A DNA stretch of 52,096 nt from Obrimoposthia wandeli (taxonomy: Eukaryota), in contig CDROCS010001231.1 in NCBI GenBank assembly GCA_977020255.1, positions 124,001 through 176,096 on the forward strand, in the 5' to 3' direction. The stretch's first letter is position 1. Every line of letters starts with the position of its first letter. Of this stretch, positions 7,127-51,297 are shown piece after piece. The translations under genes were made by a program, and so were the position numbers. The notes under the pieces were generated by a model. That model saw only the letters and a program-made list of their open reading frames with translations. It was not told the DNA's origin and searched no databases.

Positions 7127-7129
7127 GGC

Positions 7130-7997: not shown

Positions 7998-8082
7998 ACA
8001 ATTTTGAAATACAACTACAATTTTTAGGATCATGATTTTGATTAAATAAATGTTGTTTGCAAGTTTTTGGACTTTTAACAAT

Positions 8083-8096
8083 TGGTGAGCCCGAAG
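8083..8096 (+). promoter_or_regulatory. Primer-binding site (tRNA identity uncertain, Trp- or Ile-like)
   Basis: TGGTGAGCCCGAAG 2 nt after the 5' LTR; TGG complements the tRNA CCA end. Confidence 0.8.
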
Positions 8097-13405: not shown

Positions 13406-15350
13406 TTTGTAAAATAAAAAACAACACAATACCAATCAGAATCCTAAATGCAGACATTAATGAAATTCATCTCAAGGAAGGAGTACGTCTTGGAAAAATA
13501 AGTGTTATTCAAAATATTGAATTAATAGATAATGATAAAATAGAAGATAAATCTACGATAAATTTTAACGATATCAAATTAAATGATTATGAAAAATCAA
13601 AACTTAAAACTTTAACAGAAAAATATGATGTAATATTTGCTAAAAATGAATACGATTTAGGTCGAACAAATTTGATAAAACATAATCTTCCGTTAACAAC
13701 AAACACAGCAATAAAACAACGACCCTACCGAATTCCATATGCCTACAGAGATGAGGCTCAAAGACAAATAAAATGAATGTTAGAAAATGAAATTGTTAGA
13801 AGACGTTTTTCTGCATGGACATCACCTGTTGTTTTAGTAAAAAAGAAAGATGGTTCTTTGAGATTTTGCGTAGACTACAGAAAACTAAACGAAGTCACTC
13901 ACAAAGATACTTATCCACTGCCAAGAATTGATGAAATATTAGACAAACTAAAAAATGCACAAGTATTTACAACTTTAGATTTACAGAGTGGATACTGGCA
14001 AATAGAAATTGAGGAGTCAGATAAATATAAAACAGCTTTCTCAACAGGAGAAGGATTGTATGAATTCAATGTCTTACCATTTGGATTAACCGGAGCTCCA
14101 GCAACATTTCAGAGATGTATGAGCCATATTTTAATGGATGCAGATCACGTAATGGTATATATCGATGACATTCTTATTTTTTCGAAAAATTTTGAAGAAC
14201 ATTTAAAATATTTAGAAAACGTATTCTTAAGATTACAGGTAGCAGGATTAAAACTAAAACCAAAGAAATGTGAATGGATAAAAGATAAAGTAAATTACTT
14301 AGGACATGCTGTATCAGCAAAAGGAATACAACCAGACGAGAGTAATGTAGAAAAGATTAAAAATTTTCCAATCCCAAAAACAGTAAAAAATATATAGGAA
14401 TTTTTAGGGCTTGCAGGATATTATCGAAGATTTATTAGAAATTTCGCACAAATAGCAATACCATTAAATAAACTTATTAAAAAAGATGAAAAATTTGAAT
14501 GGGAAAAAGAACAACAAGAATCTTATGAATATTTAAAACAAAAACTAATCGAAAAACCTATACTTAGATATCCTAATTTTAATAACTCATTTTTAGTTAT
14601 GACTGACGCCAGTGGTTATGCGTTAGGAGCAGTTTTAGGACAACAGGAAAATAACGAAAAAGATCATGTGATAGCATATGCGAGCAGAGGTCTTAAAAAA
14701 CATGAAAAGAATTACTCAACGATAGAAAGAGAATGCCTAGCTATTTGTTTCGCAATGGAACATTTTAAACATTACTTATTAGGTCGAAAGGTTTATGTTT
14801 ACACAGATCAAAGACCATTACAATGGCTTTTAAATCATAAGGATACAACATCTAGATTAATGAGATGGGCATTGATTTTACAAAAATATGATATTGAAAT
14901 AAAATATAGAAAAGGAAAATCTAACGCTAATGCAGATTGTCTATCACGAATAAGAGAAGAAATAAACGAAATAACTGCAAATGACATCGAATTAAATCTT
15001 TTTACAATAATTCAAGCTAAATATGATAAAAAAATAATTACTAAACTTCAAAGCAAAGATAATGAAATTCAGCAAATAACTAAATACATTAGCACAAACG
15101 AAGTACCAACAGATGAAAAATTAAGAAAACATTTAAAAATATACGAATCACGATACAAATATAGTAATGAAATATTATATTATTTAAATGACAAAAATCT
15201 ATATTCACTAGTTATTCCTAAAGAAATTCAGTGTCAATTACTTCTTCAATATCATAATGGAGCCCTAGGAGGACATTTATCATCAAAAAAGACACATTCA
15301 CGATTAAATTTAAAATACTATTGGATTGACATGAAAGAAGATGTAAAAAT
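13393..15350 (+). CDS. pol: Pol: reverse transcriptase, RNase H and integrase zinc-finger start (interrupted in this sequence)
   Basis: WTSPVVLVKKKDGSLRFCVDYRKLN, PFGLTGAPATFQR, YIDDILIFS, TDASGYALGAVL, ERECLAI, NANADCLSR. One frame throughout with in-frame TGA (13774) and TAG (14395); -1 shift needed near 13391 (from PR) and at the A5 run 15345-15349 (into WCKTCEIC). Confidence 0.93.
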
Positions 15351-17666
15351 TGGTGTAAAACATGTGAAATATGTCTTAAACGGAAAAATACTTTACGTAC
15401 CACAAAAATACCTTTAAAGCCAATACCTTATCCATCAGCCCCCATGGAAACTGTTGCCATGGATGTAATGGGACCATTACCTGAAACACCCCGAGGAAAT
15501 CGATATATAATAGTATTTTCTGATTATTTTACAAGATGGCCAGAGGCTTTTCCAACACATGATCATAAGGCTGAAACCATCGCGAAGGTTTTAGTCGAAA
15601 AAATTATTTTTACTTTCGGTGCACCCCGAAAATTATTAACCGACAAAGGTCCTGAATTTATAAATAATGTATTAGCGTCAATAGCTGAAATTTTTCACAT
15701 AAAGACGATCAATACAACACCATATCACCCTCAAACTGACGGGTTAGTAGAAAGATTTAATAGAACCCTCGAAGATATGATGGCATCATACACAAACAAC
15801 AATCAAACAGATTGGGATTTACACATACCTCCATGCCTTTTTGCATATAGAACATCAGTACATGCATCCACAGGAGAAACACCTTTTTATCTTATGTTCC
15901 TCAGAGATCCTCAAATGCCTATTGACCTAACATTACTACAACCTACTACACAATATTTAGAAATACCTGAATATAAAATAGAAATTAGAGAAAGAATAAA
16001 ACTAGCATTCGAAAAAGCTAAACTATTTGTAAAAAACATACAAGAAAATTACAAAGAATATTATGATAGAAGAACTAAGCCATCAAATATAAAAAGCGGA
16101 AGTAAAGTGATGATTCACAATCCACAAATCAATGTAGGATTGTCTCACAAATTATCAAAACCATACAAAGGACCATATACAGTCATTAGTACCAACGGAA
16201 CCAACATAACAGCTAAACTAGATAATGAACCAAAATCAAAAGAAATAAGAGCACATATAAACAGATGTCGAGAAATACCTGAGGAGAATACAAAAGTAAA
16301 AAGTCACAAATATAACTTAAGATCAACTAATGATAATACAGTTCTACAAATGTTGACAATAAAAAACTCACAAAAACAAAACAAAACTATTTTGAGTCAT
16401 CAAACCAGAAATACAATAAAAATATCAATAAAAGAAATTGGTAAAATAATGATGTTATTGATAATATATTTTATAATAAAATATAACCTACTGAAAGTAA
16501 ACGCAACAAACATAAATGACAATCAATCAATCATACAACAACAAACAAATAAATACGACTCAACAACTCATCTCATAAAAAATTTTGGATTAATAACAAT
16601 AATACCTAAAATCACATCAATAAAGTTAAAAATTTCTCTTTTTACAAACAAAACAGGAAATGTGCAAATCACACAAACAGATAGAAAACAAAATATAATT
16701 ATTTCAGGAATAAAATCACAAAAATATACAATACCATTTTTAAGAACAGAAACACAATATAAAATAAGAATTAAGTCGAAATTAAAAAATATAACACTCT
16801 ATGAAAGAATTATAGAAACTCACATATACCTAGCATCAATATTAAAAACAACAGCAAAATATATATCAAAACATAAAATAATGATAAAATGGGAATTTCA
16901 ACTAAAAATAGATGACTTAGATAAAGCCCTCATTAGAATTAGATATAGAGGACATAATGCTAATTTTTGGAAAGACTCAGAAAAACAATTAGAAAATACA
17001 CAAACTAAAACAAATTTAACCATAGAAAATATAAGATATCCAGAGAAAATAATAATAGACAATAGAGAATGCGTAATCACTAATAAACCAATAATGTACA
17101 GACAATGGAGTCAAAAGTTTGAAAGTTATAAAAATCTAACAAAATTAACAATTTTAGGAAATAAGATATCCAAACTATATCAACCTACAATTTTTTGTGG
17201 TCGTTGGTCAACAGTAAAAATTAAGAAATATGTTAAAGATATAACCACAAAACAATTGCTACATACCACAACATTTACATCAAAAATTTACAGAGTTACA
17301 AATCAAGTTGAAATTACGGAAAAAATAAGAATTAAATTAAAATTAAAAACAACAGAAATAATATCATATAAATCATTTAATGAAAGTTTAAAAATGCACT
17401 ATAGTAAACAAGAACATTCAAGGAATGAAAATAAAGAAGAACTTATAATAATAGTTATAGTAATCGAAATAATTACATTTATAAATCAAATATCATGGAA
17501 AATGTTAATTTTGAAACATACAAAAACGATAGAAACAAAACAACGAAAACACTTTTGTGGGCCCCCAGGCCCTTTTACTATTTATATTATCCCCAAGGAT
17601 GATAATTCTTCAGAATTATCCATAAATACTGTAATAGAAAATAGAAAAAGAAATATAACACAATAA
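15351..17666 (+). CDS. Integrase core and GPY/F domain fused in frame to a predicted secreted/membrane protein (signal-like segment, FN3-like repeats, TM)
   Basis: CEIC zinc ligands, AMDVMGP / LTDKGPEF / GLVERFNRTL (D,D35E), KPYKGPY. Then MMLLIIYFIIKYNLLKVNA (16449), YTIPFLRTETQYKIRIKSK, IKWEF...RIRYRG...W, hydrophobic LIIIVIVIEIITFI (~17442-17500). Integrase call is firm; FN3 call is inference. Confidence 0.85.
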   Translation, partial: WCKTCEICLKRKNTLRTTKIPLKPIPYPSAPMETVAMDVMGPLPETPRGNRYIIVFSDYFTRWPEAFPTHDHKAETIAKVLVEKIIFTFGAPRKLLTDKGPEFINNVLASIAEIFHIKTINTTPYHPQTDGLVERFNRTLEDMMASYTNNNQTDWDLHIPPCLFAYRTSVHASTGETPFYLMFLRDPQMPIDLTLLQPTTQYLEIPEYKIEIRERIKLAFEKAKLFVKNIQENYKEYYDRRTKPSNIKSGSKVMIHNPQINVGLSHKLSKPYKGPYTVISTNGTNITAKLDNEPKSKEIRAHINRCREIPEENTKVKSHKYNLRSTNDNTVLQMLTIKNSQKQNKTILSHQTRNTIKISIKEIGKIMMLLIIYFIIKYNLLKVNATNINDNQSIIQQQTNKYDSTTHLIKNFGLITIIPKITSIKLKISLFTNKTGNVQITQTDRKQNIIISGIKSQKYTIPFLRTETQYKIRIKSKLKNITLYERIIETHIYLASILKTTAKYISKHKIMIKWEFQLKIDDLDKALIRIRYRGHNANFWKDSEKQLENTQTKTNLTIENIRYPEKIIIDNRECVITNKPIMYRQWSQKFESYKNLTKLTILGNKISKLYQPTIFCGRWSTVKIKKYVKDITTKQLLHTTTFTSKIYRVTNQVEITEKIRIKLKLKTTEIISYKSFNESLKMHYSKQEHSRNENKEELIIIVIVIEIITFINQISWKMLILKHTKTIETKQRKHFCGPPGPFTIYIIPKDDNSSELSINTVIENRKRNITQ

Positions 17667-17855
17667 TCAAAATTTTTTAAAAACCGTTTAAGTAACAAAA
17701 AATGTTAGTACTATTATGTAAATCTAAATTAATTAGGAAATAGAATAAAAATTTGATATATATATTTTTAAAGACGATTTAATGAAATAATATTAAAATA
17801 AAATCACCAGGAAACGCATCCTGAAATTTAATAATGGTTATTTTTAGATATAAAA

Positions 17856-18251
17856 ATGAACAGATTGGCAAAAGTTTGTAAAAAATGCAAAAAATTAGAG
17901 AAAAAGATTCGAGATGTTTCCAGACAGCATGACGACTACTATATAAAGATCACAACTCAAAATGAATCACTGAAACAGTTAATAAAACAAAGTGTGGAAG
18001 AAAAATTGAATAATGATTTAACAATTGACGAACTAGAAGGGAGATTGACACATAGTTTTGGCAGAATAGACAATTTAATACCACAAACTTTAAGTCAACG
18101 ATCAACTATAGCCTCATTAAGAAGACAAATGATGACCTATAGCGACATGATAAACTTTTATTTGACCATTAATCCTACTATCCCAACTAATACAACACTT
18201 GATGATGGATATGACTCGGATATGAACATTGGTGAACAAAATTCTGGTTAA
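17856..18251 (+). CDS. Accessory ORF, 131 aa, predicted coiled coil
   Basis: ATG-initiated intact ORF inside the element; CKKC followed by heptad-like LEKKIRDV...LKQLIKQSVEEKL...LEGRL. Confidence 0.65.
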   Translation: MNRLAKVCKKCKKLEKKIRDVSRQHDDYYIKITTQNESLKQLIKQSVEEKLNNDLTIDELEGRLTHSFGRIDNLIPQTLSQRSTIASLRRQMMTYSDMINFYLTINPTIPTNTTLDDGYDSDMNIGEQNSG

Positions 18252-18419
18252 ATTATAATCATACATCCTTCTTTTGTACAAATTGTCTAATTTTTTTTTA
18301 ATAAGTTTATTTTCATGACAAATCCCACATACTGCATGGATAAGACTGATATTTTTATAACTTTAAGACTGTGAAATAATTGTATTATTTTATTCAACTA
18401 ACAAATCTATTAAAGCAGA

Positions 18420-19592
18420 ATGGATAACAATCACCTGGATACGACTCCAGACCAGCTCACTCGGTCAGATCAAACAAAAAGCACAGCAAAAATAGAAAGA
18501 GGAAAAACGGAAAATATGCCAGAAAGGTGGTTTTTAGCAAAATTCTTGTATCAAAAGATGCGTCAGTTTAGCATTGCATACTTTAGAAACAACGGAGGAA
18601 GAAAAATGTTTTCAAATCAAACATTTCTTCCTAATAATAAAATTACCAATAAAATTACCACAGAAGAAAGAACTAGCGCACTTATTTTTTCCAATGAAAA
18701 AAGACCAACCCATATGGCTCTCAGTGAAATATTCCCCAACATTAATTGTGAAAAAATATATATTCACGTGGCACTAGGAGTAGCCCATTTAAAAACCAAA
18801 TCAGATAAGACATTAAACTTTCTGATGATAGGAAATCACACCTACACCTTACAAGCAGCTCAATTAGAAAATCAATATAGCATAAAAATAGGAAGAGGAC
18901 CAAATCTATTATTTATAGAAAAAATAAGAAAAGCAGAAGAACCTCAACAAATAGCCCTTTTTGAATTAAAAAAGAAGCCAGCAATTTTATTCCTCGATTG
19001 CGAAATGGTGATATCAGTAGATAAACAGCCAGTGTTAGCAAGTGTTTCTATTATAAATTACATAGGTAACGTAATTATAGATACACTGTGCGTAACTAGA
19101 AACAGAGTAAGAAATTACGTTACTAGAATAACTGGACTGTCAGATAGAAAGTTACAAGGATGTAGAGATGCTGATGAAGTAATTGAGGAAGTAAAAAACA
19201 TTGTGTATGGTAACATCATCGTAGGTGTGGGATTAACAAACGATTTAAAAGCTTTACGCCTACAGAAATGGATGTTATTCAACATTGTTGATTTAGGAAT
19301 ATCCAAAAGCATAAAATCAGAACTAAATCACAATCACCCAAATATTGGACTCGCCAACATGGTGCGGAAATACTTAAATATAGAAACACAAAAAGGAGTT
19401 CACACTAGCATGGAAGATGCAAATCACACCCGAAAAATTTTCATAATGAAGGAGGAAATGTTGATTAGAGAGTTTGATTTGACCGAGGTGATGAATCCAC
19501 CATCTAGCGAGAACAACCCCAGTTCATCGTTCTCGCATAAGACCGGAAACTCGGAGTCCGGTACACAAAACTCCCCGATTTTGTTGGATTAA
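18420..19592 (+). CDS. Accessory DEDDh 3'-5' exonuclease (REX4/ISG20-like) with ~190-aa unknown N-terminal domain
   Basis: ExoI LDCEMV (18996), YVTRITGL, ExoII GVGLTNDLKAL, ExoIII HTSMEDA (19401); all four acidic residues and the His are present. Confidence 0.9.
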   Translation: MDNNHLDTTPDQLTRSDQTKSTAKIERGKTENMPERWFLAKFLYQKMRQFSIAYFRNNGGRKMFSNQTFLPNNKITNKITTEERTSALIFSNEKRPTHMALSEIFPNINCEKIYIHVALGVAHLKTKSDKTLNFLMIGNHTYTLQAAQLENQYSIKIGRGPNLLFIEKIRKAEEPQQIALFELKKKPAILFLDCEMVISVDKQPVLASVSIINYIGNVIIDTLCVTRNRVRNYVTRITGLSDRKLQGCRDADEVIEEVKNIVYGNIIVGVGLTNDLKALRLQKWMLFNIVDLGISKSIKSELNHNHPNIGLANMVRKYLNIETQKGVHTSMEDANHTRKIFIMKEEMLIREFDLTEVMNPPSSENNPSSSFSHKTGNSESGTQNSPILLD

Positions 19593-19782
19593 GGTAGTAT
19601 TGTTATTATTTTATTTCTGTTTTCATTCTTGTCTAAATTTTTAACGATATTTAACCAGACATGATTGTGATTAATAAAACATTGATCAGTTGTAACATAC
19701 AAACAACACTAGGTAACAATAGAAACAAGACAAAATAGTTTAACTAATAATTAAGATAAAAATTATGATTCTGAGGACAGAG

Positions 19783-19802
19783 ACTTTTATGACCCGGAGG
19801 AT
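19783..19802 (+). promoter_or_regulatory. Polypurine-tract-like plus-strand primer region
   Basis: Purine-rich ...GACCCGGAGGAT immediately before the 3' LTR TG; short and imperfect. Confidence 0.5.
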
Positions 19803-19975
19803 TGTTGGGAAAATATATTAACTATTTGTTTAAAAAAGAAAAATAAAAATATAAAATTTTTAAAGAAATAAAAGAAAAAAGGGAATTAATTAATTGAAAA
19901 TTAATTGGGAACTTTCCTTAATTAGGGAAAAGTTCCGATTTTTAAAATTGTGCACTTTGGCATTTTGTATATTCA

Positions 19976-20027
19976 ATCTCCGACGGGAAAAAAGCCCGTT
20001 TCGCCCTGCCGGGCTCATCAGGGAGAT
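19976..20027 (-). ncRNA. Type I hammerhead ribozyme (antisense, U3 of 3' LTR)
   Basis: Identical to 7075-7126; predicted cut between 19982 and 19981, 12,901 nt from the other site. Confidence 0.95.
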
Positions 20028-20598
20028 GGCTTGTTATCTCTAACTTCGCGGTGGATTCCGCGAAGCCAGAGATAACAATAATAAAGCCAGGGAAAAGAGG
20101 GAAAGATTCCCCTTTCATGTGCCGACGAATATCGTCGACATGTGGTGTTAGTGTGCGCAAGTGCACCATTCACACACACACACACTCACTCAACATTAAC
20201 ACATCACTCAACTCACTCATTCACTCTCACTACTCACTCAATCGCTCACACAATCCCTTGTTCACTCACTCTCCCTACTCACCTATTCTTTGTGCATATG
20301 TGTGTGTTTAATTTGGCATTTTACACCTGCCCAGAATTTTGAATGACGGTGAAATTTCCCGGCTGCACATGTGTGTGTGTGTGTGCAGAGCCGGGAAATG
20401 CCAGTTTCCTCTGCCCAAATCTCTTCTCCACACCATGTCTGGTAGTGATTCGGGCAGGCAGCGAGGATTGTTAATGGGGACTACACATTGCCGGTTTCCC
20501 ACCTGCCCATCTGCTTACAGATTTATAGACACGCAAGAAGGAAATTGCTTCATAAATTTTTCACAATTTATAAAGACAAAATTATTAAATACAAAAAG

Positions 20599-20900
20599 CG
20601 AATTATTGAAACTATTTTGAATTATATATCGAATTTATGCAATCGAATTATTGAAACTATTTTGAATTATATATCGAATTTATGCAATCGAATTATTGAA
20701 ACAATTTTGAATTATATATCGAATCTAGGCAATCGAATTATTGAAACAATTTTGAATTATATATCGAATTTATGCAATCGAATTATTGAAACTATTTTGA
20801 ATTATATATCGAAATTATGCAATCGAATTATTGAAACAATTTTGAATTATATATCGAATCTAGACAATCGAATTATTGAAACTATTTTGAATTATATATT
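20599..20900 (+). repeat. 45-bp tandem array inside 3' LTR
   Basis: Same unit order and variants as in the 5' LTR. Confidence 0.95.
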
Positions 20901-23281
20901 ACAATTTTGAAATACAACTACAATTTTTAGGATCATGATTTTGATTAAATAAATGTTGTTTGCAAGTTTTTGGACTTTTAACAGATGTGTTGGGTTGGGG
21001 TAGTGTCGGATTAAGACATGCGCTTTGGAGGCAGCAGCCCACGACCCTCCAGATATTATATGGCAGTTTTTTTCCCTAAAGCAATATATTGCTTTTAAAA
21101 CATTACTTTACTGTCAGTTCACGTCAACTATCAAGTGTTTTAAGAAAATGAAAGTTCTACAAAGTTGCTCACTTTATTTATTTTGTTTTATCGGCAGATT
21201 ATTTCGTTTTTAATTGACAAGCGGATAGTATATGCAGGTACGTTTGGGTAATAGTAGTTATCTATTATTATTTGATAGCATAAAATTGCGTAAAGCAAAT
21301 ATGTGAATTATACTTTTCTTACCAATTTATAAGTTTTTATTATTTTGTATTACACTGTCAAACTAGTATAATATGTCTGGTAAAATATTGAATTATTTGA
21401 TTATTGTTACGAGTTGATTGAATTTACCGTTGTCGTAAACAGAAGAAAACACCTTATATAATTCGACATATTATACAAAATAAGTAGCTGTATTGTAACA
21501 GCTTACAAAAACATTTTCTCAAAATATCAATTTAGTAATATTGTTATCATAATATCATATTCTTGCTTACCAAAATATTAAAAGAGGTATTTCTAACATT
21601 AACTTTTAGTAATCGGACGTTCAGATAGGATGTCTGCAGAAACTATAGCCCATGGACCTACAATATAATAATCCAGCCCTGTGTTCGGGACAAAAGCTAG
21701 CTACCGAAACCAGAAAATAAATCTGGGGTCTCTCTATTTGCAGGTCACGCATTCTATCCCAGAACTACCGTACATTGTAATTTCACCCGAATTTCTAAAT
21801 GGGGATTATGGACCTAAAATTATCAGTAACATATTTTATCAAATATAAATCTTTTAAATTGTAAAAATTAACAAAGCAAAAGGCGATACATATAAACTGT
21901 GGGGAGAAACTATGTCTCATTATTTTTTAAAATAATTTAATCTATAATTTTTTGAGTATTTAAAAATTATTCGAACTGCCTGGACTATATTATTCAGTAA
22001 TTTATTCCAATGCTATTGCAGATTTTCATGGTAAATGTAACAGTCAATTTCATTTATAAAAGTTTATTGTCCAAAACTGATTATACAAATCAAATGTCGG
22101 TTATTTGTAATACATATATTTCATGGGAGAGGCACAAAAGTATGTCTTTCTTCTGAGACGATTTTTTACACGATAGAAGATAATCAGAACACGAGCTAAT
22201 TGTGAAATAGGATACTATCCTCCTGATTGAATGTTATTTTATATTTATTAAGAGGAAATAATAATTACCCAAAAATTAACTATGGCCTATTGCAAAGTGA
22301 TATGTAGCTTTTGAATTTGTTATTGATTTTTATTTTAAGTCAATAGGTTATATTTATAATTACATAATAGCTCAAAGTGGAAGAGATCTAAATCAAATGG
22401 TGACAGGAAAGAACAAAATTCTTTCAACAATGAAGCTTTCGTTAAAAATGTCTCTCCGGTATTTTGATCACTTTATGAACTATCTTACTTTATGGTCATG
22501 TAATAATCTCAAAATATCAATTGCATGCTAGAAATGAAATTAACTTTCAAAATGATTTAATAAGTTGATTAAATGCCATATTGGCCTCACGTTCCAAAAT
22601 AACCATTCACCTTTACCATCTAAGAAATTAATTATTTTTTGGATGAACCCGTTTACTGTCACACTTCAAAATGCAGCTCATGTGGTTTAAATTTATAGAA
22701 GACTTTGAAGTATAGAAATCACGCAAATCCCTAGACTTTTAATCCTGTAAATAATACTCAAATCCATGCAGTTCCCTCTGCACCGAATGAGTCAACCAAG
22801 ATTTACATGAGGACGCTTTTAAAATATAAATAAAATACCTGATTTTAAAATTTTGTCATTGCCTACATTAACATGAGATTTTATTAATTTGGGAATAAAT
22901 TATTCATTATTCTAGCTTCCAAAGTAAATTTTTTAAACTGCCAGAACTAAGGTAACCTAGAATTGATCTTCAACTTGACTGTTATTTTGATTTTATAACA
23001 CCCCATGAAATTCAATAATAAAACTATTCGACGTTTTGTAGTAATATAGTAATGTAATCTAGAGAATAACAAATAAACAACATGTGCATGTGTAAACAAA
23101 TTTCAGGTAGAAAAGATTACATCATAGCTTGAGGGAGACAGAAATAAGTGTATAGAAACTAGGCATAAATAATCACTGACACACACAAATACAGCCAGTG
23201 ACCAGATTTAATACAAGTGCATCTGGTATTGCACTTGAATGTTTGGTGCACACATAATAAGCTCAGCACATACAAACATTG

Positions 23282-32900: not shown

Positions 32901-35900
32901 ACTGTGATAATCTATCTTTTTCATTGTTTCTAATTCTATAATACGGACAGTGTACAAATAAAAGGATTTTTCCTTCAAATTGTTTTTGATTTTTATTGCA
33001 AGGGTTTTCTAAAAGCACAATCTTTGATCCAAATAAATAGCATTTATTCAGTTAAACTTATTTTATTCGATTAACTAATTTTATGATTTCTGCAAAATAT
33101 TGAAACATTAAATATAGATTATACATAAATTTATTACTTATAAATAAATGTAGTATATTATGCATCAATAATATGTTTTAAATATACTGGCCAACTTTGA
33201 TTATTTCAAATCATTTCTTGAGACATTAAAATTTTGCCGATTACGTATTGCTACATATACAGAGACACAAAAATTGTATCAAAATAAATCTGATTATGAA
33301 ATTCTATATTTAGATAATTAAACTTGAAAAATACTTTTAAAGAAATTTTTACAAATAGGATTTTATAGCTTTCAATTGTCGTTAAATTTTTATATAATAT
33401 TTCATTTTGGGATCAAGTTAAATTAAATAATACAAACCCTTTAGATTCTGTGACAGCTGCTAACCTTACTAAAGTACATCGTCGCCATTCGTTGATTGAC
33501 GAACTTGATTAGGTATGCAAGGGATACAAGTATCAGTATGAAACAGTTACTAAAGGTTTCTCCCATAAAGAGGACCTTAGAAGTAAAAGTAAAGTTTTCA
33601 AGGTTTGAGCAAACTTGTATATTTCATGAAATTATAAATTTCAAGAGTTACCAAAGTGAGCGATGGAGGCGCTACCGCGTGGGAGTGGCTAAGAGACACT
33701 GTCTAAACGTAACTTTGTTTTCAATGCCTTCATTTGATTTCATTTAAACTTTATTAGATTTCTAAATTTAGGATAAAGAGCATTTTTCTGAGTTTGCTCT
33801 AACTCTGCTGTTATTAATTATGACATTTCTCGTATTGGATTGAAAGGGGTTTAAGCGTCGTGGCCAAGGTTGGGAGATGTAATAACTGACTTGTCTATAA
33901 CTGACAGACATTCGTGACGCCCTTCCATTTTATTGACCTTTCATGTGGTAAAGTACCGGCAAGCTGGTTTGTGTGCAATACGTTGAATTAATACTATTCA
34001 TGTCAGAGTTTTTATGGTGTAGATAAGATTTTGCAAAAACATCGCTCCTCAAAATTTATTTGTTAAGGGAGAGTTAGGGAACCACTGGTACATCCTTTCT
34101 GCTGACTTATTACTTAATTGACGAAATACTCATGATTCTGTAGATAATGGTGGTTCTTTCACAATATATTTGGTTTATTTTTTATATATTGTTTGAAGGA
34201 AATCATAAAACTTTAAAAAAGCATCGAATTTCGATTGGTGAATACAAAATCTTTATATTGAATGCATAAGGGAATATGGGACATTTTTAACTAAAGTAAA
34301 CATAATCAAACCCTTCACACGATTGGTAAAAACAACTCTACTGGGATGATAACTCGTGTAAAAAATTAACAAACAAAACAGAAACACTATAATAGTAAGC
34401 TAACTCAGCAAACCCAGTCCTTGATAAATCGGTTTTTGGTCTGAAATCAGATTTGTTTGCTCTTTATTGAAAGGCTTCTTTATAGAAAACAAACCGGGGG
34501 AAATTGGAGATTTTTGATCAAGCCAAAATAAATATAAAACTATAATGCATCACTGTTTAGAGACTGAATTCAACAACAAATTTCATCAATATTTGCTGGC
34601 ATTGGAGTTTGGAAATAACATCAGGTATTACTGGGAACCCGGGTTCAATTCTATCAAATATAAAATTATAAATCTTTATCACTATTGTAGGCTTACGAAA
34701 AATACAATTACAGAAACATGAAATACACTGTTACTGATATAGTTACCCAAGACATAAACATAAGATCACCTTCATCGGGGGAACGGTCTTTACTAGGCAT
34801 ATGGTTATTAATACAGCAACACGATATGTGGAATTACTTTTACGCAAGACTCACGCAGGGAATTAAATACATAGTAAAAAGTTGATATACGTTTATCGAT
34901 TGGTAGTGTAGTTTTATTACTTCAGGTAAGATGTAAAAGATGCTCTAGTATGTTTTAAATTTTAATAAATTAAATCAATGTTTTTGTGACTAAAAACCCG
35001 TCGCACAGTATCAATTATTCGCGACAAAGAACTGCTAAATAAGACACAACATTAGGTTAGCCTTGACAAACTTAAACCCGAGTTAGCAACTGACTTGGGC
35101 CACTTTGTTCAGTCCCCGTAGATGTCGCCTGATAGGTCGAGGCAGCATTCGCTGTGGCCGTGGGGGCTGCAGAGGGTTGCTGTCGGTGCTCGGTACGTTC
35201 CTTCGTCATCGAGCTCTGCAGATCCTTCATCAGCTCCTCCTTCTCCGTTTTACGTGCAAAGCAGAAGTCCTTCACCTGTTCACACAGCGATTTATACTCA
35301 GATATGACCATCAAAGCCGACAAACCTTATTCTGGAACTTGATGAATATCTCAGTAAGGTCTCCATAGAACTTTTGGCTCTCTTCAGGTTGGCTGTGAGC
35401 TCAACGAACTTGTCTGCGGCTAGCATCAAGCCAGAGACGATATTGGCTCGACTGGACATTTGTCCAGACCCACTGCCACCCGCAAAACGTGTGGCCTTTT
35501 CTTGGATTCGGACAACAAAGAGTCCTGTTCCTGTAGGGACTCTCGTACACGTTCACGCAGTGGCTGCAACAGCTCAGTCAAGCGGGAGTTAACAAATTCC
35601 TCCTGACTTAATTCGGAGTTTTCGCTCATCGCCTTGGTGAATGCAGCGTCTGAAAAGCGAGGATAGATAATGAAACAATAAAATGAACATATCTAAGAAT
35701 TATCATATTTACACAAAAATTGAATTATAAACATCGATGATAATTACAATGACATATTGCATAATATTGGCCACCTACTGATGTCTTTTTCATTAGCACA
35801 TCACTCACTGAGGCTGCTGGGGTCCATGGCCTGCACCTCGGCCACGAAATCAGTACGAGCTGCCTTCACCGAATCCACCTCGCGACATAGTACCCGCAGC

Positions 35901-38900
35901 TCAGACTTGAGAGACTCTGATCCCTCGGTATCGGTGTCAGCGGAGCCGCCCGTTGTACGTGGGAGGCTCTGCTTGAGTTCAGCTTCAGGCTTACTGACAA
36001 CTCGCCAGTTTGCTGCATGCTGTTGGTAAGTGCTCCGGATTGTCTCGTCCGCAACGCGTGCCTGCAACAAGATGGCATCAGCTAAATATTTGTCAAACTA
36101 TGACTACATACCGTTTAAAATGTAATTCAACTTTATTCTCCGTGGTATTTTATTATCCAAAGTGAAACTGAGTAGAATAAAGTAACCAGGGCAATAATCA
36201 AAGATGATTTTCGGCAATATGTAGTTTATTTATCATTTTTCGTTGATTAAATTTAATTGAGTAAATATTATAGTTGAAACAGTTCAATAAAAAACATAAA
36301 ATATCACTTGTAGAGAAAAATAATTGCACAACTTTTAAAAGAAAACAATTTGATAAAAAAAGAAGAACATGGCAAGACTGCTTTCAGAATCTGCTGAATG
36401 ATTCCCCAATAACAAATCACACGAATGATGTTAAAGCAATAAAGGCCTTTCTAAATGGTGTAGGAAATCTAATACGTACGATAAAAAATTATGAACACGG
36501 TTGAATGTCATTTTTGAAGCATAAAATGCGTTCCACAAAAACCTCCAAAAACCTCCAAAATTCCCAAAATATAAAAAATCACATTCTTCAAAAAAGAATA
36601 TTTTGCGTTCCTCAAATAATGAACTGTCAACAAGCTTCACAAACCAAAAATTGTACGTTCAAAAAAAGAGTTTTATTAAAATAAAAACAAACAAAAAGTT
36701 CTGACCGTATGGTAAAAATGGTGTAATGTATAGATTTCTAGTCAAAGCTGCATCTAAATTGATATCTGGACGACCAACTTTAGACATAATCCCGTGACGT
36801 TATCATCTCTACTTCCGTTCAGATATTTAATCGAATTTGATCCCGTGACAATTCAAATCATAAAATGTCAAGGTCATAAAATACCACATTATCGTCCAAC
36901 TGTATTTAGCTATCAATGACCCTTCAATACAAGTAATTAGGGTTTACCAGAAGCAGTTCAATGTTTGTTGTGCATCGTATGATAAAGTAAAGGTTTGCAG
37001 GACAACTAAGAAGTGGAATGAAGGTTTGGTGAAGGTTGAAAGCAGAGACGGTAGTGGAAAACGAGAAATATTTGATGACAATGGTCACTTAATGGAAATA
37101 AATTCAAAATGTTTAATTTCTGTTGAAAATTGCAAGTGATGCTCAATGTTTAAAATGAACAGTACATCGAATATTTCATCAAATGAACTTCAGGCTATAC
37201 AAGCCTAGAAAGGTACAATTTCTGACATAAGTTTATGAAGCACGAGTAGCATTCACTGAGTGGATCTCAGCTTAACAGGTGACATTCAGTTGCTGTGAGG
37301 AAGTGTTTGGTTCGATACCACTTTATTGCCCTAAGAGTTTGGGTTAGTGTGGTGTTGCTGAAGGAGTTTTACAAAATTCCGTCTTCTTTGAAGGAACTTT
37401 AAACGACCAACGCTAACTTGAGATGCTAATAGATCATGTGGATTCCTCTATTAGAAGGAAGATATACATGTCAAGAATGATATATCAGTAAGATGGAGCT
37501 CAACCACACAAAAAATATTTTTAAGAAACAATTTCATTATGATGTATATGCTTTGTTGAAAATAATGTTCAAGATGGAAGCATTTCCCATAAAATAATAC
37601 AGAGAACTGCTTGTGCAAACTACTTGAAACACTATATAACAATATTTATTGAGATAACATATTTTTCAGATTGATATTATATCTTAATTTCTTTCCATCT
37701 AATTTAGGCTGCATGTGCACATACAAATATTTCTGAAAACTTGTATAAAATTGAAACAAGGTTAGGTTAAAGTCTAGCATTGAGTTATAAGATCTCACCT
37801 GTTCTAACAGCGTTTTGAACTTCTTGGACTCGTTGCGCCACACCTCAGTCAGCTTGCCAGAAGGTGTGCGATTCCAACGATCCTTGAACTGGTCCTTCAA
37901 CTTACTGTCAGAGGTTTCTTCCTCATCTAACATATTGATGGCCTGTAAGTATAGAAAAATACATGTGATGATAGAATCCGTAAACCATGTACCAGTCCAT
38001 TCAATCAGATGTACACTTTTTTCAAACAGCTGTTTTATGATAAACAAGTTAATTGCGGATTTCAGAGTAATTTAAAAGAGCATTTTGAAAGAATTCTAAT
38101 GACTGATTTTAAACAAAAAGTTATTTAAATCAATTAAAAGACAAAATCCCAATTCGAAGATGACTGACCTCATTTAGGATCTCAGTGTTGCGCTGAAGCA
38201 GATCCGGAAGAACATTGATCAAGTTGTCTATCTTGTCTATGCCACCTGCGCTGCGGACCGCGGCAGACTTGACGAGGAGCACCTCCGGTAACTGGTCCCC
38301 GCGACTCTCCTCTACAGCACCGGGAAGACTCAGTGACGTCATTACTCCGTTCAGGACCTCGGTAGCTTCCTGAAATTGACATAGATTAGAGCCTAACTGA
38401 TATCAGATTGGGCAATTAAACCCATAAATTAATAGATTGTGAATATTAAACTAGACGTTAGTTGAGTAGCTTTTACTGCAGTTATTTTTTGGTAATTATC
38501 AGGAAGATCGTATGTTGAATAAACGGGTACACACCTTGAGTCGATAAATTTCGGCTCCGATGAGCTCTCGGCGCTTATTCTCCAGAAACAAGATAGCGGA
38601 GTGCATCGCTAGAGGAACAATTTTGCCAAATAGATCGTGGAAGTTATTGTTGATGGGATTCTCGAGTGGTAACTCTTTGGCAATAACAGCCTTGGCAATG
38701 AGGGACAGAGATGCTGATTCATGGATGGTCTCATGATAGATGAGATTGTTCTCCTTCTCTACCGTCTCCAGATCACGCCGGATCCGGTCTTGCTCAGTAC
38801 GGAACATGAACTTCTGACCTGCACGACTGCTTGACGTTTTCAGGAGCTCTGTCGCTTTCTGCAAAGGGAGAGACAAATCTGGCTTCAATATACGCAGCGG

Positions 38901-41900
38901 AAAGTGACTATAAACCTTATCTCTTTCACATATCGATGCACCAATGAAAGACGGAATGTAGAGTAAACATGCAGACATGGGTGCTCTCAGAAATAGAGCT
39001 TACATTTATTTCTTTAGATATACTGCTTATTTTTATAATTAAGTTTCAATCATGAATTTGATAAATGTTCGATAAAGCTGTTCATTTCTCGAGCATACAT
39101 TTGGGTAATCTTAGTCCAATTCAAGAAAGTAAATGTAGCTCATTTCGAAAGATCTCGATTGCTACTCACTCTCAGTCTGCCAATCATCTCTCCAAAAGCC
39201 TGGTTGGAACCGCACGCCTTGCCCTGATAGTACTCGGCCAGACCATGGTATCCTGCCTGTTTGCCAGCAACTAACGGGATCCAATCCTGAAAGAAAGCAG
39301 GTTTAAATCGACTGTGGCAGCTTTGTCTATGTTGTTGTTAATTATTATCATTAATCATGTTTCGTACTTACCTTAGGCCAAACGGACTTAACAGAATTGA
39401 GCTGCATAAGTTTCAGAGCGTCAGCGTACAGATCTACGACTTGTTGAGTGATTTTGGCCACCATGACATCCTTCATTTAATCTACGTATAACGATCAGAA
39501 GAATGTCAGCAACTGAGGAGGAAACCGAAAAAATTAACACATATGAGTTAGAGGAGATTAAATAACAAACCTCGGACAGCTTTCATGTGAATGAGCTCCT
39601 GGGCCTGAGCCAGCATAAGCGCACCGAGAGTATTGAGTGTATCTGAGTTAAGGTCGACTGTGGGGTCACGCTGAATGATACCGGGTACAGCCACCTTTAG
39701 GTAGGCATAGATGCCAGCCGCTTGCTGCACGAGATAGAATAAGAGGCCAGGTTACAAGATTATCATAACTTGACCTAAGCTGCCTGACCATATTTGACAC
39801 ACCAAATCGCGACACTGCATAATTTACACTTCAAGTCACTGATTTAAACAGCAAATTCATCCAATATTACACATTCATTGATTTTTTTTCTACATTGAGG
39901 AATTTGTAGCTTTTATCTTATTGTGTATAAGTTTTGCTTTTCTTCATAAAAATTATCTTGTCTCATTTTGCAAATGTTTAAAAAGTTTTTAGAATTTTGC
40001 TTATAAAATTAAAAATAAACTAAACATGAATTTGGATTATTTATGGCGTATTTGCGTTCGACAACTTTTTCAAAATAATAGAACGGACGTTCTACAGCAA
40101 TGGACAAGGAAATGACCAGTTAAAAATTATAATAATGTATACAGTAATACCCGAAACAGTGCGGTTCCAAACAATGCGGTTTCACTATAGTGCGAATTTC
40201 GTAAAATATTAGTAAATAAATAAAATATAGAATAAAACTATATTTAATTCTTCAAAAATATCAATATTGATTTACAGATTTATATATTATATTCTTAAAA
40301 CTCACATTTTAGAAATTATTCTTTCATCTGATATTTTCCGAGTCAATATTGCAGAATACCATTATTAAAACAGATTGTATTGAAATGTTACGTCAAACAA
40401 AAGAAAGCACAATGTTGGTCCAAACTAACGACAGTGGCTAACATTAGAAAATAAATTAGATGTTATATATATGAAGATGGTGTATCATTGGCTAAAATTG
40501 CACGCGTTTATAAAATAAATGAGTCATCTGTGCGTGTTATTGTAAAGAAGAAACAACAATATAAAGATCATGGAATTGCTACTGCATCGTACATGAAAAA
40601 AGAATTGCAATAAATAGAGACAAAAACATGCTGAATATGGAACTTTTATTAATTGTAATGAAAAAAAGAATTCAACTCAGTCAACTTAGTATCCAAGAAA
40701 ATGCACGAAATCTGTTTAGCGCAGTTACCACTCAAATGAAAATGAAGGGATACCTCTACGACTACAAATGAAGAAAAATCTTTTAATACAAGCCACAGTT
40801 GGTTCAATCGCTTTAAAGAACGTATAAAATTCATAATGTTAGAATTGTCGGTTAAAGTGCTAGTGCTGATGTAGAAGCAGCCGCAAAAAAATATCCTGAT
40901 GAATTAAAAAAAATATTGAAGATGGTAATACAGTGATCATCAAATATTTAATGTGGATGAAACAGGATTGTTTTGGAAGAAAATGCCTACTCGAACATAT
41001 GTAGCTGAAAAAGAAAAAGCACAGCCGATATATTAACCTCTGAACACAACTTCGTTATTACAGCCGATGGACCAAGGAGTGATCGCAACATTCAAGGCTT
41101 ATTATAGGAGACAAGCTTTTTCTCAATTAATTAAAGTTACGACAGGAGAAAATGCCTTTTCATTAACTGATTTTTTTAAAAGAATTATAATATCAGATTT
41201 GCAATTGAAAATATTGATTCAGCATCGCGTTAAGTTACTTGTTAGCAACATGAGAGGTGTATGATGAAGCTTTAAAAATTATTATGAATGGAGACCCAAA
41301 TGTCGAACACAGCATCCAAGTGCGAAACACTGTTGAAAATAGGATTTGATGCTACAGAGAACTTTATGCCACAAAAACGAAGAAGAAATCAGTACAAACT
41401 TCTTTGTTTAATTATTTTTCTAAACAATAAAAACCTTTCAGTATTCTTTTTGTTTCAATTAATATTTAATTATAATCTTGTTTCATTATCTCTGTTAATG
41501 CTCGTTTTTAATGCATTTAATAACTTTTCATTATTTTATCGATATTTATTCAGTCCGGAACGAATTACTATTAAACTCATTATATAATGCATCAAACAGT
41601 GCGGTTCCGAACAGTGCAGAACAATTCTGGCACGAATTACCCGGGGTATTACTGTATAGTGATATGACTAACCATAATTTATTTATTTTAATGTGTTTTT
41701 TATTATTAATGTTAACAATTTCTTTTAAGATGTCAGATTATTTAGTTAAATGGGCCTTTCAAATTGGGCAAGTTAAGATTCTCAAGGATTTACAATGAAT
41801 CAAAATTGTTATGCGTGTCATTTTTGATTAGATAAAAAGATAGAATACGGTAGATCTAGACAAACTACAGAACGATGCGATAGGACAATTATAAGAACAA

Positions 41901-44228
41901 TTAAAATACATCCTTTGATAGTTTCTCAAGATCTTAATAATCAATTAAATTTAAATATATATACAGAAACTATAAAACGACATTTGCATGAAGTTAAACA
42001 TTACAACACAAAACGTAAACAGAGTTTATCTTAATGAAAACAAAGGAAAACATAGTTCAACGAAACGTTGTATATCACCTGACATTAATTCCAAAGAGAA
42101 TATTTGGTCGATATTCAAACTACGTGTTAGAAGACAAAAACATTCAACGATAATTTATCTAGTTTATCCGACAAATTAATCATAGCATGAACCGATATCA
42201 ATCAAGGAACAATTAAAAGTCTCCATGACAAAAAGACTTTCAAAATTACTTTAAGGAAAAAAATAAAATTATGATTTTTGTATAATTATTATAATTTTAG
42301 CTGCTTTATTATATGAAAATGTATAATTCATCGAAGATTTTTCATAAATTGTGATCCAATAAACTTATGACCACACACGCACACACTAAACAACCGGTGA
42401 AAAAAATGTTCCCATTGCAAACCAGTGAAACAATGATGAAAAACTCAAATACGAACCAAGCGATTACTCCTTGTAGTGTATTCTTTCCAAGCATGAGAAT
42501 AACCAAATTTACATTACTTATAAAAAGGATTGATCTAATTTATTTACATGATCTTCGTTTCTGACAGGAAATGATAATTAACTATGTCTTCCTCAGTACT
42601 TACCTAATCGTTATTCAGTAAATCTTACAAATTATAAAGCCTGTACAATTTTTATATAAACGAATTCCTTTTGTTTCAAATTCTTTTTTTATATTCGCTG
42701 ATTTGAATTTTCTTAGACAAATTTTTGCTTAAAACTAAATATAATCAATAAAATATACAGTTAACACAAAAATATACATATATGACATTGTCACTTTTAG
42801 GCTCGACTTCCATTATTCATTATTTTACAACCCTTCACTATTACAAAGAAGTGAGTAATATTTGCAAATTATCTTTAAAATAAATATGCTGTTGAATAAT
42901 ACATTGAATGAGATTGGTCGATAAATTATCAAATAGAGGATAAAATAAATTTATTGTTTCAAAAATGCTCAGTTTTAAAGTTACATCCTTATTCGTATAA
43001 ACGTCTAAAAATCGAAATTTCATGTTCAATAAATTTGAGAAAGCAACTATAATAGTAGACTGTAAATTCAAATATCTAAATCGAAGAAAGACCGCATTTT
43101 ACTGAGATTAGCCTTAGTTTTTCTTTGGCATATTAAGGAATTCAGAGGAGAGATGAAGACATTCCTAAAGTTGCCGATTTATAAAGTGTATTTGAAAAAT
43201 ATTTTTCATAATTACTAAAGTGGCTCATAATTTAACTTAATTTAGGTTACGTACCATATTTGAACTCCATAATATTTCAGAAGTAGACGTTGATTTCCTG
43301 GTCTGTTAAAATTGCCCTGACAATAAAGATCCATTCGAGCACTAAGTGACCCCAAATTGTCATTGTGTATATCAAATATTTATTTATCAATTAAAATGAT
43401 GTAATAGTTATTCAAATTAGATCAATTTTGCGATAAAATACATAAATTTCGTTATATTTACAGTTACCCATCAATAGTTGCAAAATTGAAGAAAATCTAT
43501 GTATGTTAAGGTAGTAATCATGAGCACACAAATAATGCAAAAACAAACTTCTGGACAGTTAAAGGATTTAAAGATGAAATGTTAGAAATTAATTGATATT
43601 AGTTAGAAATCCTGCGTATGCTTAAATTTAACAATTTATTTATCACATCAAAGTATTGTGCAATAAATATCCAATAAAATCGTTTTATCACAAATATTTT
43701 AAATAAAGAATTAAAAATGAATTAATTATCTAACCTGATAATATTTGGCAGCAGTCTTAAGACCAGATTCATCATTTAAATTCTGACTGTCGGCAACTTG
43801 TGAATAGAGAGAGGCAATATTGAACAAAACGCAAATTCTTTCATATGCACCCGATGCAATCTTTAAAGTTGTCTTTTTACCAAAAAGACTTTCCTTGCTG
43901 AAAGCATCTTCCCACTTAAAATCTATTCTTACATTATTTTCCTCCATCGGTATTTTTGTTTCCAAAGCTACAAACTGATCATGATACCTAAATATTTATA
44001 ACAAAAAATCTGAGAAACTATTTACTTAGTTAAAACAGATAATGCTGACTCATGTTTATCAAATAATTTACTGAGCATTCTATTACGCATATTATTAAAC
44101 TCTGTAAAAGCTGCTGTGTGATTTGTACACTGTTCGTCGCCATATGTATCTTTTACATATGAAGACAATATGGCTGCCATATTTATTTCAAACCCTTTTT
44201 TGCAGGGTACACTTAAAAATTGCGTCAT
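29975..44228 (-). CDS. PDCD6IP: ALIX / programmed cell death 6-interacting protein (Bro1, V domain, proline-rich tail), 14 exons
   Basis: Exons 44228-44026, 43987-43735, 39724-39571, 39481-39372, 39286-39170, 38858-38535, 38369-38169, 37942-37799, 36061-35809, 35649-35326, 35275-35095, 32610-32554, 31092-31015, 30180-29975; all GT-AG and phase-consistent. Motifs FKWEDAF, YERICVLFNIA, KENNLIYHE, LDEEE..D..LK.QF.DRW.RTPS, FARKTE, C-terminal YYPR. Lesions in this sequence: TAA at 39479-39477 and 1-nt losses near 35507 and 35384. Confidence 0.93.
37250..37520 (+). mobile_element. Degenerate Tc1/mariner transposase fragment in an ALIX intron
   Basis: Broken frames giving PLYCPK...CG......VFFEGTLN...LEML and YQ*DGAQPH (QQDGAPPH-like); boundaries approximate. 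Confidence 0.45.
40142..41654 (+). mobile_element. Internally deleted, degenerate Tigger/pogo DNA transposon in ALIX intron 2
   Basis: 11-bp TIR CAGTAATACCC/GGGTATTACTG flanked by TA; broken CENP-B-like HTH (LTLENKLDVI...IARVYKINESSVR), SWFNRFKER, FNVDETGLFWK, LQPMDQGVIATFKAYYRR. Confidence 0.88.
41880..42200 (+). mobile_element. Degenerate Tc1-like transposase fragment
   Basis: ETIKRHLHE and SPDINSKENIWSIFKLRV (SPDLNPIENLW-like); boundaries approximate. Confidence 0.55.
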
Positions 44229-44707: not shown

Positions 44708-45439
44708 TGTTAGGATTACAATTTTAAAAAATAAAAATACAATTTAAAAATTTTAATAATTTCTTAATTAGGAAATAACGAGAGAAATTTCCTTAATTAA
44801 GAAAATATTTTAGGGTATGAAATGCACTTTGGCATTTAATAATCAGTTTATTTAGTTCAGTCCCCGACCGGCTTAACCAGTTTCGCCCTACCGGGCTCGT
44901 CAGAGGACGGCAGATTTATCTCTGGCTTCGGTGGGCAAAATTCCCGCGAAGTCAGAGATAAAAATAAAAAATAAAGGTCCACTTACCTGCACACAGTCGC
45001 CCAGGTTGTGCAGAGCTCACCAATTTTCCACATTCTCCTTCCCGGACTACCTTCCCCGGATCCTGACTGCCAAGATACAATATCTTTGTCTCAGACAGTT
45101 TTCCTGTCTGGAGGGAGAGGAAAAATGCAGTTTTCCTCGATCAACAGCAGACCAAACTTCTATCAGCTGCATCTGCCAACGGTCAATGTCAATTTCCCTG
45201 CTGTTATCGAGGTCGCTGCCTGTCCCCTCTCTCTCTCCCATTTGTCTGTTTCTCTTGCCATTAACTAGCGCTGATTTCGGAAGCTGCTGCCAGGATCACG
45301 CTATATGGGAGATATCACCGTGCATTTGTCGCACACTGACTCCTGGATCGATCCTTGGTGGAATTTATATAAAACAATACAACAAATGTGATTGAGTAAT
45401 AGAATTTGAACAAGTGATTTTGATTATTTATTTTCAACA
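44708..45439 (+). mobile_element. Solo LTR (732 bp) of a related family
   Basis: TGTT...AACA termini with TATA duplication (44704-44707 and 45440-45443); shares TGCACTTTGGCATTT, hammerhead, TTATCTCT...AGAGATAA hairpin, TATAAA (45368) and TGATTTTGATTA with the full-length LTR. Confidence 0.85.
44860..44908 (-). ncRNA. Type I hammerhead ribozyme (antisense in solo LTR)
   Basis: Minus strand GUCCU-CUGACGA-GCCC-GGUA-GGGC-GAAA-CUGG-UUAAG-CCGG-UC/GGGGAC; core intact, stem I needs a 1-nt bulge. Confidence 0.88.
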
Positions 45440-49828: not shown

Positions 49829-50210
49829 CATACCTTCAAACGTTCAAGTTATAACTGAGTCCGACCCTTTCATATATATTAACGACCACAACCTTTTAGA
49901 TGTATTGATTAAGCATACGGTCACAACCATACCTTTCGTCTTCAAGTCAAAACTGAGTCCGACCTTTTTCATATAGGATTGACTACAACCTTGGGTGTGT
50001 TGGCCAACCATGATGGTCATGACCATACCTTCAAATCCTTCAAATCAAACTGAGTCCGGACCCTTTCATCTATGGACGACCACAACTTTAGATGTTGATT
50101 AAGTATAGATATTATGACCATACCTTCAAACTTTCAAGTCAAAACCGAGTCCGACCCTTTCATCTATGGACGACCACAACCCTTAGGTGTAAGTTGGCCA
50201 ACAATAGATT
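49829..50210 (+). repeat. Diverged ~96-bp tandem repeat, 4 copies in ABAB order
   Basis: CATACCTT at 49829, 49928, 50024, 50119; shared AACTGAGTCCGACCCTTTCAT...GACCACAAC; alternating tails (TTAGATGT..GATTAAG versus GGTGT..TTGGCCAAC). Confidence 0.85.
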
Positions 50211-50965: not shown

Positions 50966-51297
50966 TTATCCACTTTCAATTTATTTGAAATTAGTTATCC
51001 ACTTCTCAATTTGTTTGAAACCAGTTATCCACTTCACCTATTTGAAATCAGTTATCCACTTCTCAATTTGTTTGAAACCAGTTATCCACTTTCGTTCTAT
51101 TTGAAATCAGTTATCCATCACTTCAATTTGTTTGAAACCAGTTATCCACTTCTCAATTTGTTTGAAACCAGTTATCCACTTCTCAATTTATTTGAAACCA
51201 GTTAACCACTTCTAACGGTTTTTGAAACTAGTTATTCACTTCTCAATTTATTTGAACCAGTTATCCAATTTTCAATTTGTTTGAAACCATTTACCCA
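50966..51297 (+). repeat. 30-bp tandem array (~11 copies) inside third LTR
   Basis: Unit TTATCCACTTCTCAATTTGTTTGAAACCAG with scattered variants. Confidence 0.92.

Follow-up and report, generated by a model that had tools for sequence, protein, structure and literature searches.

Why does a hammerhead ribozyme motif lie on the strand opposite to the genes of a long terminal repeat (LTR) retroelement, and has selection kept it there? The question is raised by a stretch of 52,096 nt from the genome of Obrimoposthia wandeli (assembly GCA_977020255.1, contig CDROCS010001231.1, positions 124,001 to 176,096 of the forward strand), which was analysed at its full length and is referred to below as the window. 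The window contains a 14.1-kb Ty3/Gypsy-like LTR element, hereafter the carrier, with one hammerhead motif in each of its two LTRs, and a solo LTR of a related, diverged family with a third. Judged from its sequence and predicted fold, the motif qualifies as a genuine type I hammerhead with a complete structure, its copies are kin by descent, and self-cleavage is predicted. The best reading of these data, which we give about an even chance of being right, is that selection has maintained a minus-strand type I hammerhead in a lineage of glycoprotein-bearing Ty3/Gypsy-like elements, in the 5' part of their LTR.

Position and architecture of the hammerhead motifs

The motif of the solo LTR occupies positions 44860-44908 on the minus strand and was recognised by reading of the sequence, a descriptor match and pair counts. 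An earlier note on this DNA had placed a hammerhead at exactly these coordinates, with the strand unstated. Cleavage is predicted after C17 at 44866, i.e., between 44866 and 44865. Together with two conserved unpaired flanks that are identical in both LTR families, GCC on the 5' side (44911-44909) and UGAA on the 3' side (44859-44856), the unit spans 44856-44911. In the carrier, the motif is found on the minus strand at 7075-7126 in the 5' LTR (Rfam Hammerhead_1, folds and descriptor; predicted cleavage between 7081 and 7080) and at 19976-20027 in the 3' LTR (descriptor and core-string search; predicted cleavage between 19982 and 19981). The latter two are identical, as the repeats match at 100% here, and are treated together as the carrier copy. 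The hammerheads sit ~175-230 nt from the 5' edge of the LTR, at the same place in both LTR families, and all three are antisense to the genes of the element, which are on the plus strand.

On the minus strand, from 44908 to 44860, the solo copy is composed of the 5' strand of stem I (5 nt), CUGACGA, stem II (GCCC/GGGC with the loop GGUA), GAAA, stem III (A15.1-U16.1 plus 4 bp, with the loop UUAAG), C17, and the 3' strand of stem I (6 nt). The hammerhead core (C3 U4 G5 A6 N7 G8 A9, G12 A13 A14, the pair A15.1-U16.1, and a residue other than G at H17) is present in three of the three copies. At N7 the carrier copy has U and the solo copy has C; all have GUC as the cleavage triplet. Helix I is open and helices II and III are capped in every copy, which is the type I layout. 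The helices I, II and III of the carrier copy comprise 6, 4, and 5 bp, its loop III is a run of six U, and the canonical three-way junction is its minimum-free-energy fold. The solo copy has 5 bp and one extra base in helix I, followed by 4 and 5-6 bp in the other two, with every pair possible. No helix was predicted beyond the GCC and UGAA flanks. Both flanks and the GGYA loop II are kept, and a loop-loop contact through them is suggested by an argument from conservation only.

The descriptor, which requires all parts of a type I hammerhead (core, a minimum of 3-4 bp per helix, and a U-H cleavage site), matched three times in the window, always on the minus strand and always at homologous LTR positions, whereas 0.023 matches per 52 kb were expected based on Markov-simulated sequence. 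Likewise, a 24-nt string covering the core and stem II, with up to three mismatches allowed, was found only at the same three places (0 expected). When a 71-nt slice was compared to the Rfam model Hammerhead_1 (RF00163), the carrier copy aligned over its full length with a score of 32.4 bits (gathering score, 34) and an E-value of 4e-7 in the slice. A search of the whole window at the Rfam gathering level produced no hit, and this failure to reach the thresholds is what could be said for a chance resemblance in AT-rich repetitive DNA. Such a resemblance is barely conceivable: the excess of matches over expectation at homologous positions and the full-length type I alignment speak against it, and it is already effectively refuted by the descriptor, core-string and Rfam results.

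Several other interpretations of the motif were considered and rejected. An E-value scan of the whole window produced only weak type III alignments of ~24 bits, in which the neighbouring hairpin was borrowed as a false helix I. A type III hammerhead would leave the carrier copy with a 2-bp helix III and the solo copy without a U-H site. For the solo copy, Rfam's type I model was outscored by a truncated type III match (24.2 bits). Transcription of the motif by polymerase III was dismissed because the six-U loop III of the carrier copy would terminate it. Finally, an alternative pairing between an arm of the hairpin and stem I, present in the carrier copy, was dropped as it is not kept in the solo copy.

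Substitution pattern and folds

The cores of the carrier and solo copies are identical except for the U to C change at N7, so the structural alignment confirmed the sole core change listed in the earlier note. Stem II is identical in both families, and loop II changes from GGCA in the carrier copy to GGUA in the solo copy; the retention of stem II, of the GCC/UGAA flanks and of the GGYA loop, also claimed there, was evident from the alignment of the two families. All 15 pairs are kept in the structural alignment, and 29 out of 29 scorable pair cells are standard pairs. Three pairs differ on both sides, two of them in stem I and one in stem III (G-C to U-G). Stem I additionally contains two pairs that change from C-G to U-G, and one of its bases is deleted, giving a bulge or a register shift. 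The description of stems I and III as rewritten with pairing kept thus stands for the pairing and for stem I, but goes too far for stem III, where only one of five pairs changed.

The retained pairing depends on the register: when the 3' partners were slid by 1-3 columns, pairing dropped from 100% to 35-55%. In a simulation, we also placed 9-10 substitutions at random among the 45 positions of the carrier copy that were scored. In this post hoc test, an intact core with at most one broken pair was obtained in 0.02-0.05% of trials (p-value ~0.0002-0.0005). A core that is untouched and helices that change while pairing is kept are what selection on an RNA fold predicts. The unpaired core is meaningful on the minus strand only.

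The strands of the solo copy differ in their folding. Its 56-nt segment reaches -21.8 kcal/mol on the minus strand; the plus strand no longer forms the junction and reaches only -14.8 kcal/mol (z = +0.34). The G-U pairs in stem I of the solo copy are pairs on the minus strand only, since they correspond to C-A on the plus strand. Both strands of the carrier copy fold well.

Conservation of the surrounding LTR sequence

The first ~300 nt of the solo LTR align with the 5' part of the carrier LTR in the same orientation. BLAST reported 69% identity over 223 nt between the two LTR families, and in a MAFFT alignment, the stretches on either side of the hammerhead were 51-58% identical when gaps were counted. 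The remaining 430-860 nt of the two LTRs were unalignable. The earlier note had called the flanking sequence barely alignable; similarity is indeed poor, and absent from the rest of the LTR, but the first ~300 nt are clearly alignable and include other conserved islands. The portion of the LTR that aligns and is rich in islands coincides exactly with the surroundings of the ribozyme.

The perfectly conserved islands in the flanks are 9-14 nt long, and the hammerhead is not the sole conserved block. The longest identical runs in the alignment are a 14-mer at 44824-44837, which on the minus strand lies a short way 3' of the hammerhead; a 12-mer in a palindrome containing TAATTA; a 10-mer across helix II plus GAAA; and the two arms of a long hairpin. 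Palindromic blocks around TAATTA (TTCC..TAATTA..GGAA) are kept in both families (6990-7035 and 44755-44815) and may be protein-binding sites. The hairpin, identified from folds, lies beside the hammerhead. It has 16 bp in the 5' LTR (7135-7172), recurs at 20036-20073 in the 3' LTR, and is found at 44915-44962 in the solo LTR, on the 5' side of the motif as read on the minus strand. In the solo copy its arms are conserved and its apical part is rewritten. Its strand signals are contradictory, with two G-U pairs on the minus strand in the carrier copy and one on the plus strand in the solo copy. After the hairpin on the plus strand, both LTR families have AATAAAG (7166-7176 and 44963-44976). If this is the poly(A) signal of the element, the mirror image of the hammerhead and the hairpin would fall in an R-like region, and U5 would be unusually long.

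The carrier element

The carrier spans 6902-20983, and all its genes are on the plus strand. Its 5' LTR (6902-8080, plus strand, 1179 nt) and 3' LTR (19803-20983, plus strand, 1181 nt) both have TG..CA ends and differ by one mismatch and one 2-nt indel, which indicates a recent insertion. The element is bordered by GATG on both sides, a 4-bp target duplication. Direct LTRs with TG..CA ends, a short duplication, and the gene order protease, reverse transcriptase (RT), RNase H, integrase are all present, as in Ty3/Gypsy-like elements. The carrier is a recently inserted, glycoprotein-bearing Ty3/Gypsy-like LTR retroelement. Both its primer-binding site (PBS) and its polypurine tract (PPT) are only suggestive: a TGG is located 2 nt past the 5' LTR, and a short purine run precedes the 3' LTR. 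No transfer RNA genes were found in the window.

A long open reading frame (ORF) at 9119-13405 (plus strand) encodes a Monjiviricetes-type fusion glycoprotein domain (PF24664, 302 bits) followed by a retropepsin-like protease (matches to aspartic protease families and DDI1-like protease chains). For an LTR element, it is unusual that an envelope-like gene, here a fusion glycoprotein domain of the type known from negative-strand RNA viruses, precedes the protease within one ORF. Word search revealed no homologues of this glycoprotein/protease ORF; its first ~800 residues had neither a family match nor word-search homologues. The RT, RNase H and integrase region follows at 13393-17666 on the plus strand (RVT_1, RT_RNaseH, Integrase_H2C2, and rve). 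It is split by two internal in-frame stops and two frame changes despite the near identity of the LTRs; either recoding is used, or the young copy is defective. Just upstream of the 3' LTR, a domain search identified an accessory ORF with an RNase T/DEDD-type 3'-5' exonuclease domain (18420-19592, plus strand), whose closest relatives among 1.8 billion representatives are 31-36% identical. Rotifer Terminons and some LTR elements are reported to have similar accessory exonucleases (PMC6431247). Each LTR of the carrier contains, in its 3' part, an array of a 45-nt tandem repeat (6.7 copies, 94% matches) at 7696-7996 and 20599-20899.

The solo LTR and its surroundings

The solo LTR of the related, diverged family extends over 44708-45439 on the plus strand (732 nt), with TG..CA ends and a TATA/TATA target duplication. 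No element ORFs adjoin it. With its homology to the carrier LTR, its own duplication and no adjoining internal region, it qualifies as a solo LTR, in agreement with the earlier note. The duplication is AT-only in AT-rich DNA (~30% GC) and is weak evidence on its own.

A neighbour outside the element is an ALIX-like host gene on the minus strand (35072-44228), with BRO1 and ALIX V-domain exons and introns. Its first coding exon, a BRO1-domain exon, is at 44022-44228 (minus strand). The solo LTR is ~480 nt upstream of this exon, and the hammerhead, ~630 nt upstream of the start codon of the gene, is co-oriented with the gene and points towards the exon. This proximity may be relevant. Elsewhere in the window, further tandem arrays were found at 49829-50190 (95 nt, 3.8 copies) and 50966-51297 (30 nt, 11.2 copies), and the segment 23217-24186 is repetitive and pyrimidine-rich on the plus strand, with an ORF on the minus strand that is acidic, of low complexity and without a match to any family.

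Comparison with known ribozyme-bearing elements

Plant retrozymes are small, non-autonomous and non-coding elements whose LTRs bear type III hammerheads in the sense direction relative to PBS and PPT (PMC4918200, PMC7761336). The carrier resembles them in having one hammerhead in each of two LTRs, a 4-bp target duplication, and a link to Ty3/Gypsy. It does not belong with them: those elements are small and non-coding, with sense type III motifs, and the RNA between their ribozymes is excised and circularised, whereas the carrier is a coding element of 14.1 kb with type I motifs on the opposite strand. Animal non-LTR retrozymes possess canonical type I hammerheads in tandem repeats of 170-400 bp (PMC7229834). 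Shared with these are the canonical type I structure, the stable helix III and short helix II, the AT-rich composition and the position beside strongly self-paired RNA, here the adjacent hairpin. In contrast to their tandem repeats without LTR, PBS, or PPT, the motif is present as a single copy per LTR of a classical LTR element; no tandem monomers carry it, which sets it apart from metazoan-type retrozymes.

Minimal type I hammerhead variants are described for Terminons and Penelope-like elements (PLEs) (PMC6431247, citing Cervera and De la Pena 2014). The likeness to PLEs and Terminons lies in a hammerhead inside the terminal repeats of a retroelement and in the accessory DEDD-type exonuclease ORF (PMC6431247). 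PLEs differ by their minimal sense hammerheads, pseudo-LTRs, a different RT and no integrase; the carrier has RVT_1, RNase H, an rve integrase and true LTRs, and helix III of its hammerhead is stable rather than minimal, so it is not a Penelope-like element.

HDV-like ribozymes (HDV, hepatitis delta virus) are located at the 5' ends of R2-type non-LTR elements. Hammerheads are also known from introns and untranslated regions of amniotes (PMC7229834). As in both of these cases, a genomic self-cleaving ribozyme, here a predicted one, is placed where it could cut a polymerase II transcript. Amniote and R2 ribozymes act on the sense transcript of their carrier, whereas a transcript of the ALIX-like gene that includes the solo LTR is only hypothetical.

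Searches for relatives were also made in sequence collections. A metagenome scan with the core and stem II yielded at least 120 loci, all of them unrelated, mostly GC-rich prokaryotic or phage hammerheads, and without homology in the flanks. Scans of viral and prokaryote genomes with two patterns gave unrelated matches only, and no relative of the element was detected among viral contigs. Relatives of the integrase ORF are at most 56% identical, with no hammerhead in the four of their contigs that were scanned; those of the exonuclease ORF are at most 36% identical, with none in two scanned contigs. In a literature search, no hammerhead was found described in an autonomous-type LTR element or in the opposite orientation, and a string search for the core sequences returned no paper.

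Weighing the explanations

Several results weigh against a selected minus-strand hammerhead. No relatives with the motif were found in the metagenome, viral or prokaryote-genome collections or in the contigs of the relatives, and the literature search found no published antisense ribozyme in an LTR, an absence that is not proof of novelty. Neither the carrier copy nor the solo copy reaches the Rfam gathering score. The covariation announced in the earlier note consists of three pairs changed on both sides, but only two independent lineages provide it, and the column-shuffle control was weak (54 of 500 shuffles; not significant with two distinct sequences). Stem I of the solo copy is weakened by two G-U pairs and the extra base, which forms a bulge or stands as an unpaired G beside the cleavage site. 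ViennaRNA prefers, for the solo copy, a fold at -21.8 kcal/mol in which CUGAC of the core is paired with GUCGG; hammerhead-compatible folds reach -18.9 kcal/mol for the best core-free one and about -13.8 kcal/mol for versions with an internal bulge, in nearest-neighbour energies that ignore tertiary stabilisation of the core. The solo copy is the weaker ribozyme candidate and may be slower or inactive. The conserved neighbouring blocks and the hairpin, lastly, show that reasons other than the ribozyme, possibly at the level of DNA, also constrain the region. One rival is a passenger, i.e., a fragment of a hammerhead-bearing PLE or non-LTR retrozyme that was captured in reverse by an ancestral LTR, has no ribozyme role, and looks intact because the region is constrained otherwise (regulatory DNA blocks, integrase-proximal sequence, structure of sense RNA or complementary DNA) and only two lineages are available. 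Animal type I hammerheads are known in PLEs and non-LTR retrozymes and not in LTR elements, the orientation is wrong for processing the RNA of the element itself, neighbouring non-ribozyme blocks are conserved as well or better, and the hammerhead fold of the solo copy is not its minimum-free-energy fold. We nevertheless consider an inherited passenger somewhat unlikely, since constraint on the DNA or the sense strand leaves unexplained why 11 unpaired core bases stay hammerhead-like, as well as the compensated helix changes and the minus-only G-U pairs of the solo copy.

Compensatory change requires selection somewhere, and it could have acted in donors if each LTR family had obtained its ribozyme independently, or had it renewed by gene conversion, from retrozymes or PLEs active elsewhere in the genome; known type I carriers are abundant in invertebrate genomes. 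The identical position and orientation in both families, the homology that extends past the motif in both directions, as far as the LTR edge and across the hairpin, and the absence of any other hammerhead or donor-like copy from the window make this a doubtful history. Constraint on the plus strand, with the hammerhead likeness of the other strand incidental, is more improbable still. It would concern the terminal RNA of the element, an R-like domain with a three-way junction, the hairpin and AAUAAA, and the carrier copy does fold into a mirror three-way junction and hairpin on that strand (-43 kcal/mol, z = -3.75), with AATAAAG following the hairpin in both families. Such a mirror junction needs no hammerhead core, the accidental presence of ~11 fixed bases being ~1 in 4^11 by our own arithmetic, and it is the plus-strand junction that the solo copy loses while its minus strand keeps the junction. 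We retain selection on the minus-strand hammerhead as the best reading. The earlier note had opposed purifying selection to a one-off capture; the pattern fits selection on the fold (p-value ~2-5e-4), but the opposition is a false one: most parsimoniously, the motif was captured once, before the two LTR families separated, and was then retained.

Possible role and significance

Under selection on the minus-strand hammerhead, the motif would have entered an ancestral LTR once, the likely donor being a type I carrier such as a PLE or non-LTR retrozyme, and would since have been kept by selection on minus-strand RNA. Any minus-strand transcript across the LTR would then cut itself after C17 (7081, 19982 and 44866). 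Such transcripts could stem from read-in from flanking genes, from antisense starts inside the LTR, or from precursors of the type made by Piwi-interacting RNA (piRNA) clusters. The ribozyme and the hairpin would stay with the 5' product, which would have a 2',3'-cyclic phosphate at its end, and the downstream RNA would lack a cap and begin with a 5'-OH. Summed between two LTRs, the products would correspond to an antisense RNA of unit length. Since the ribozyme lies antisense to the genes of the element, retrozyme-like processing of the element's own RNA does not apply. The most likely role would be truncation and inactivation of antisense or outward-reading LTR transcripts, which, by conjecture, would shield neighbouring genes or restrict the element's full-length antisense RNA.

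A more specific proposal is that the ribozyme is an adaptation of the element against its own antisense RNA, whether it destroys long antisense RNAs that feed silencing through double-stranded RNA, small interfering RNA or piRNA, neutralises outward antisense transcription into neighbouring genes, or releases a ligatable unit-length antisense RNA consisting of one LTR and the internal region. We regard this proposal as unlikely; if it were true, an LTR retroelement would, in each of these roles, be putting a self-cleaving ribozyme to a new use.

Eukaryotic genomic hammerheads have so far been tied to PLEs, retrozymes, satellite-like repeats and a few host introns, and all act on the sense RNA of their carrier. 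As the motif scores below the Rfam gathering thresholds, copies of this kind would be missed by standard annotation. If a coding Gypsy-like element that inserted recently does keep an antisense hammerhead in its LTRs, one more carrier would join the list, and the question would arise whether retroelements manage antisense transcription with ribozymes.
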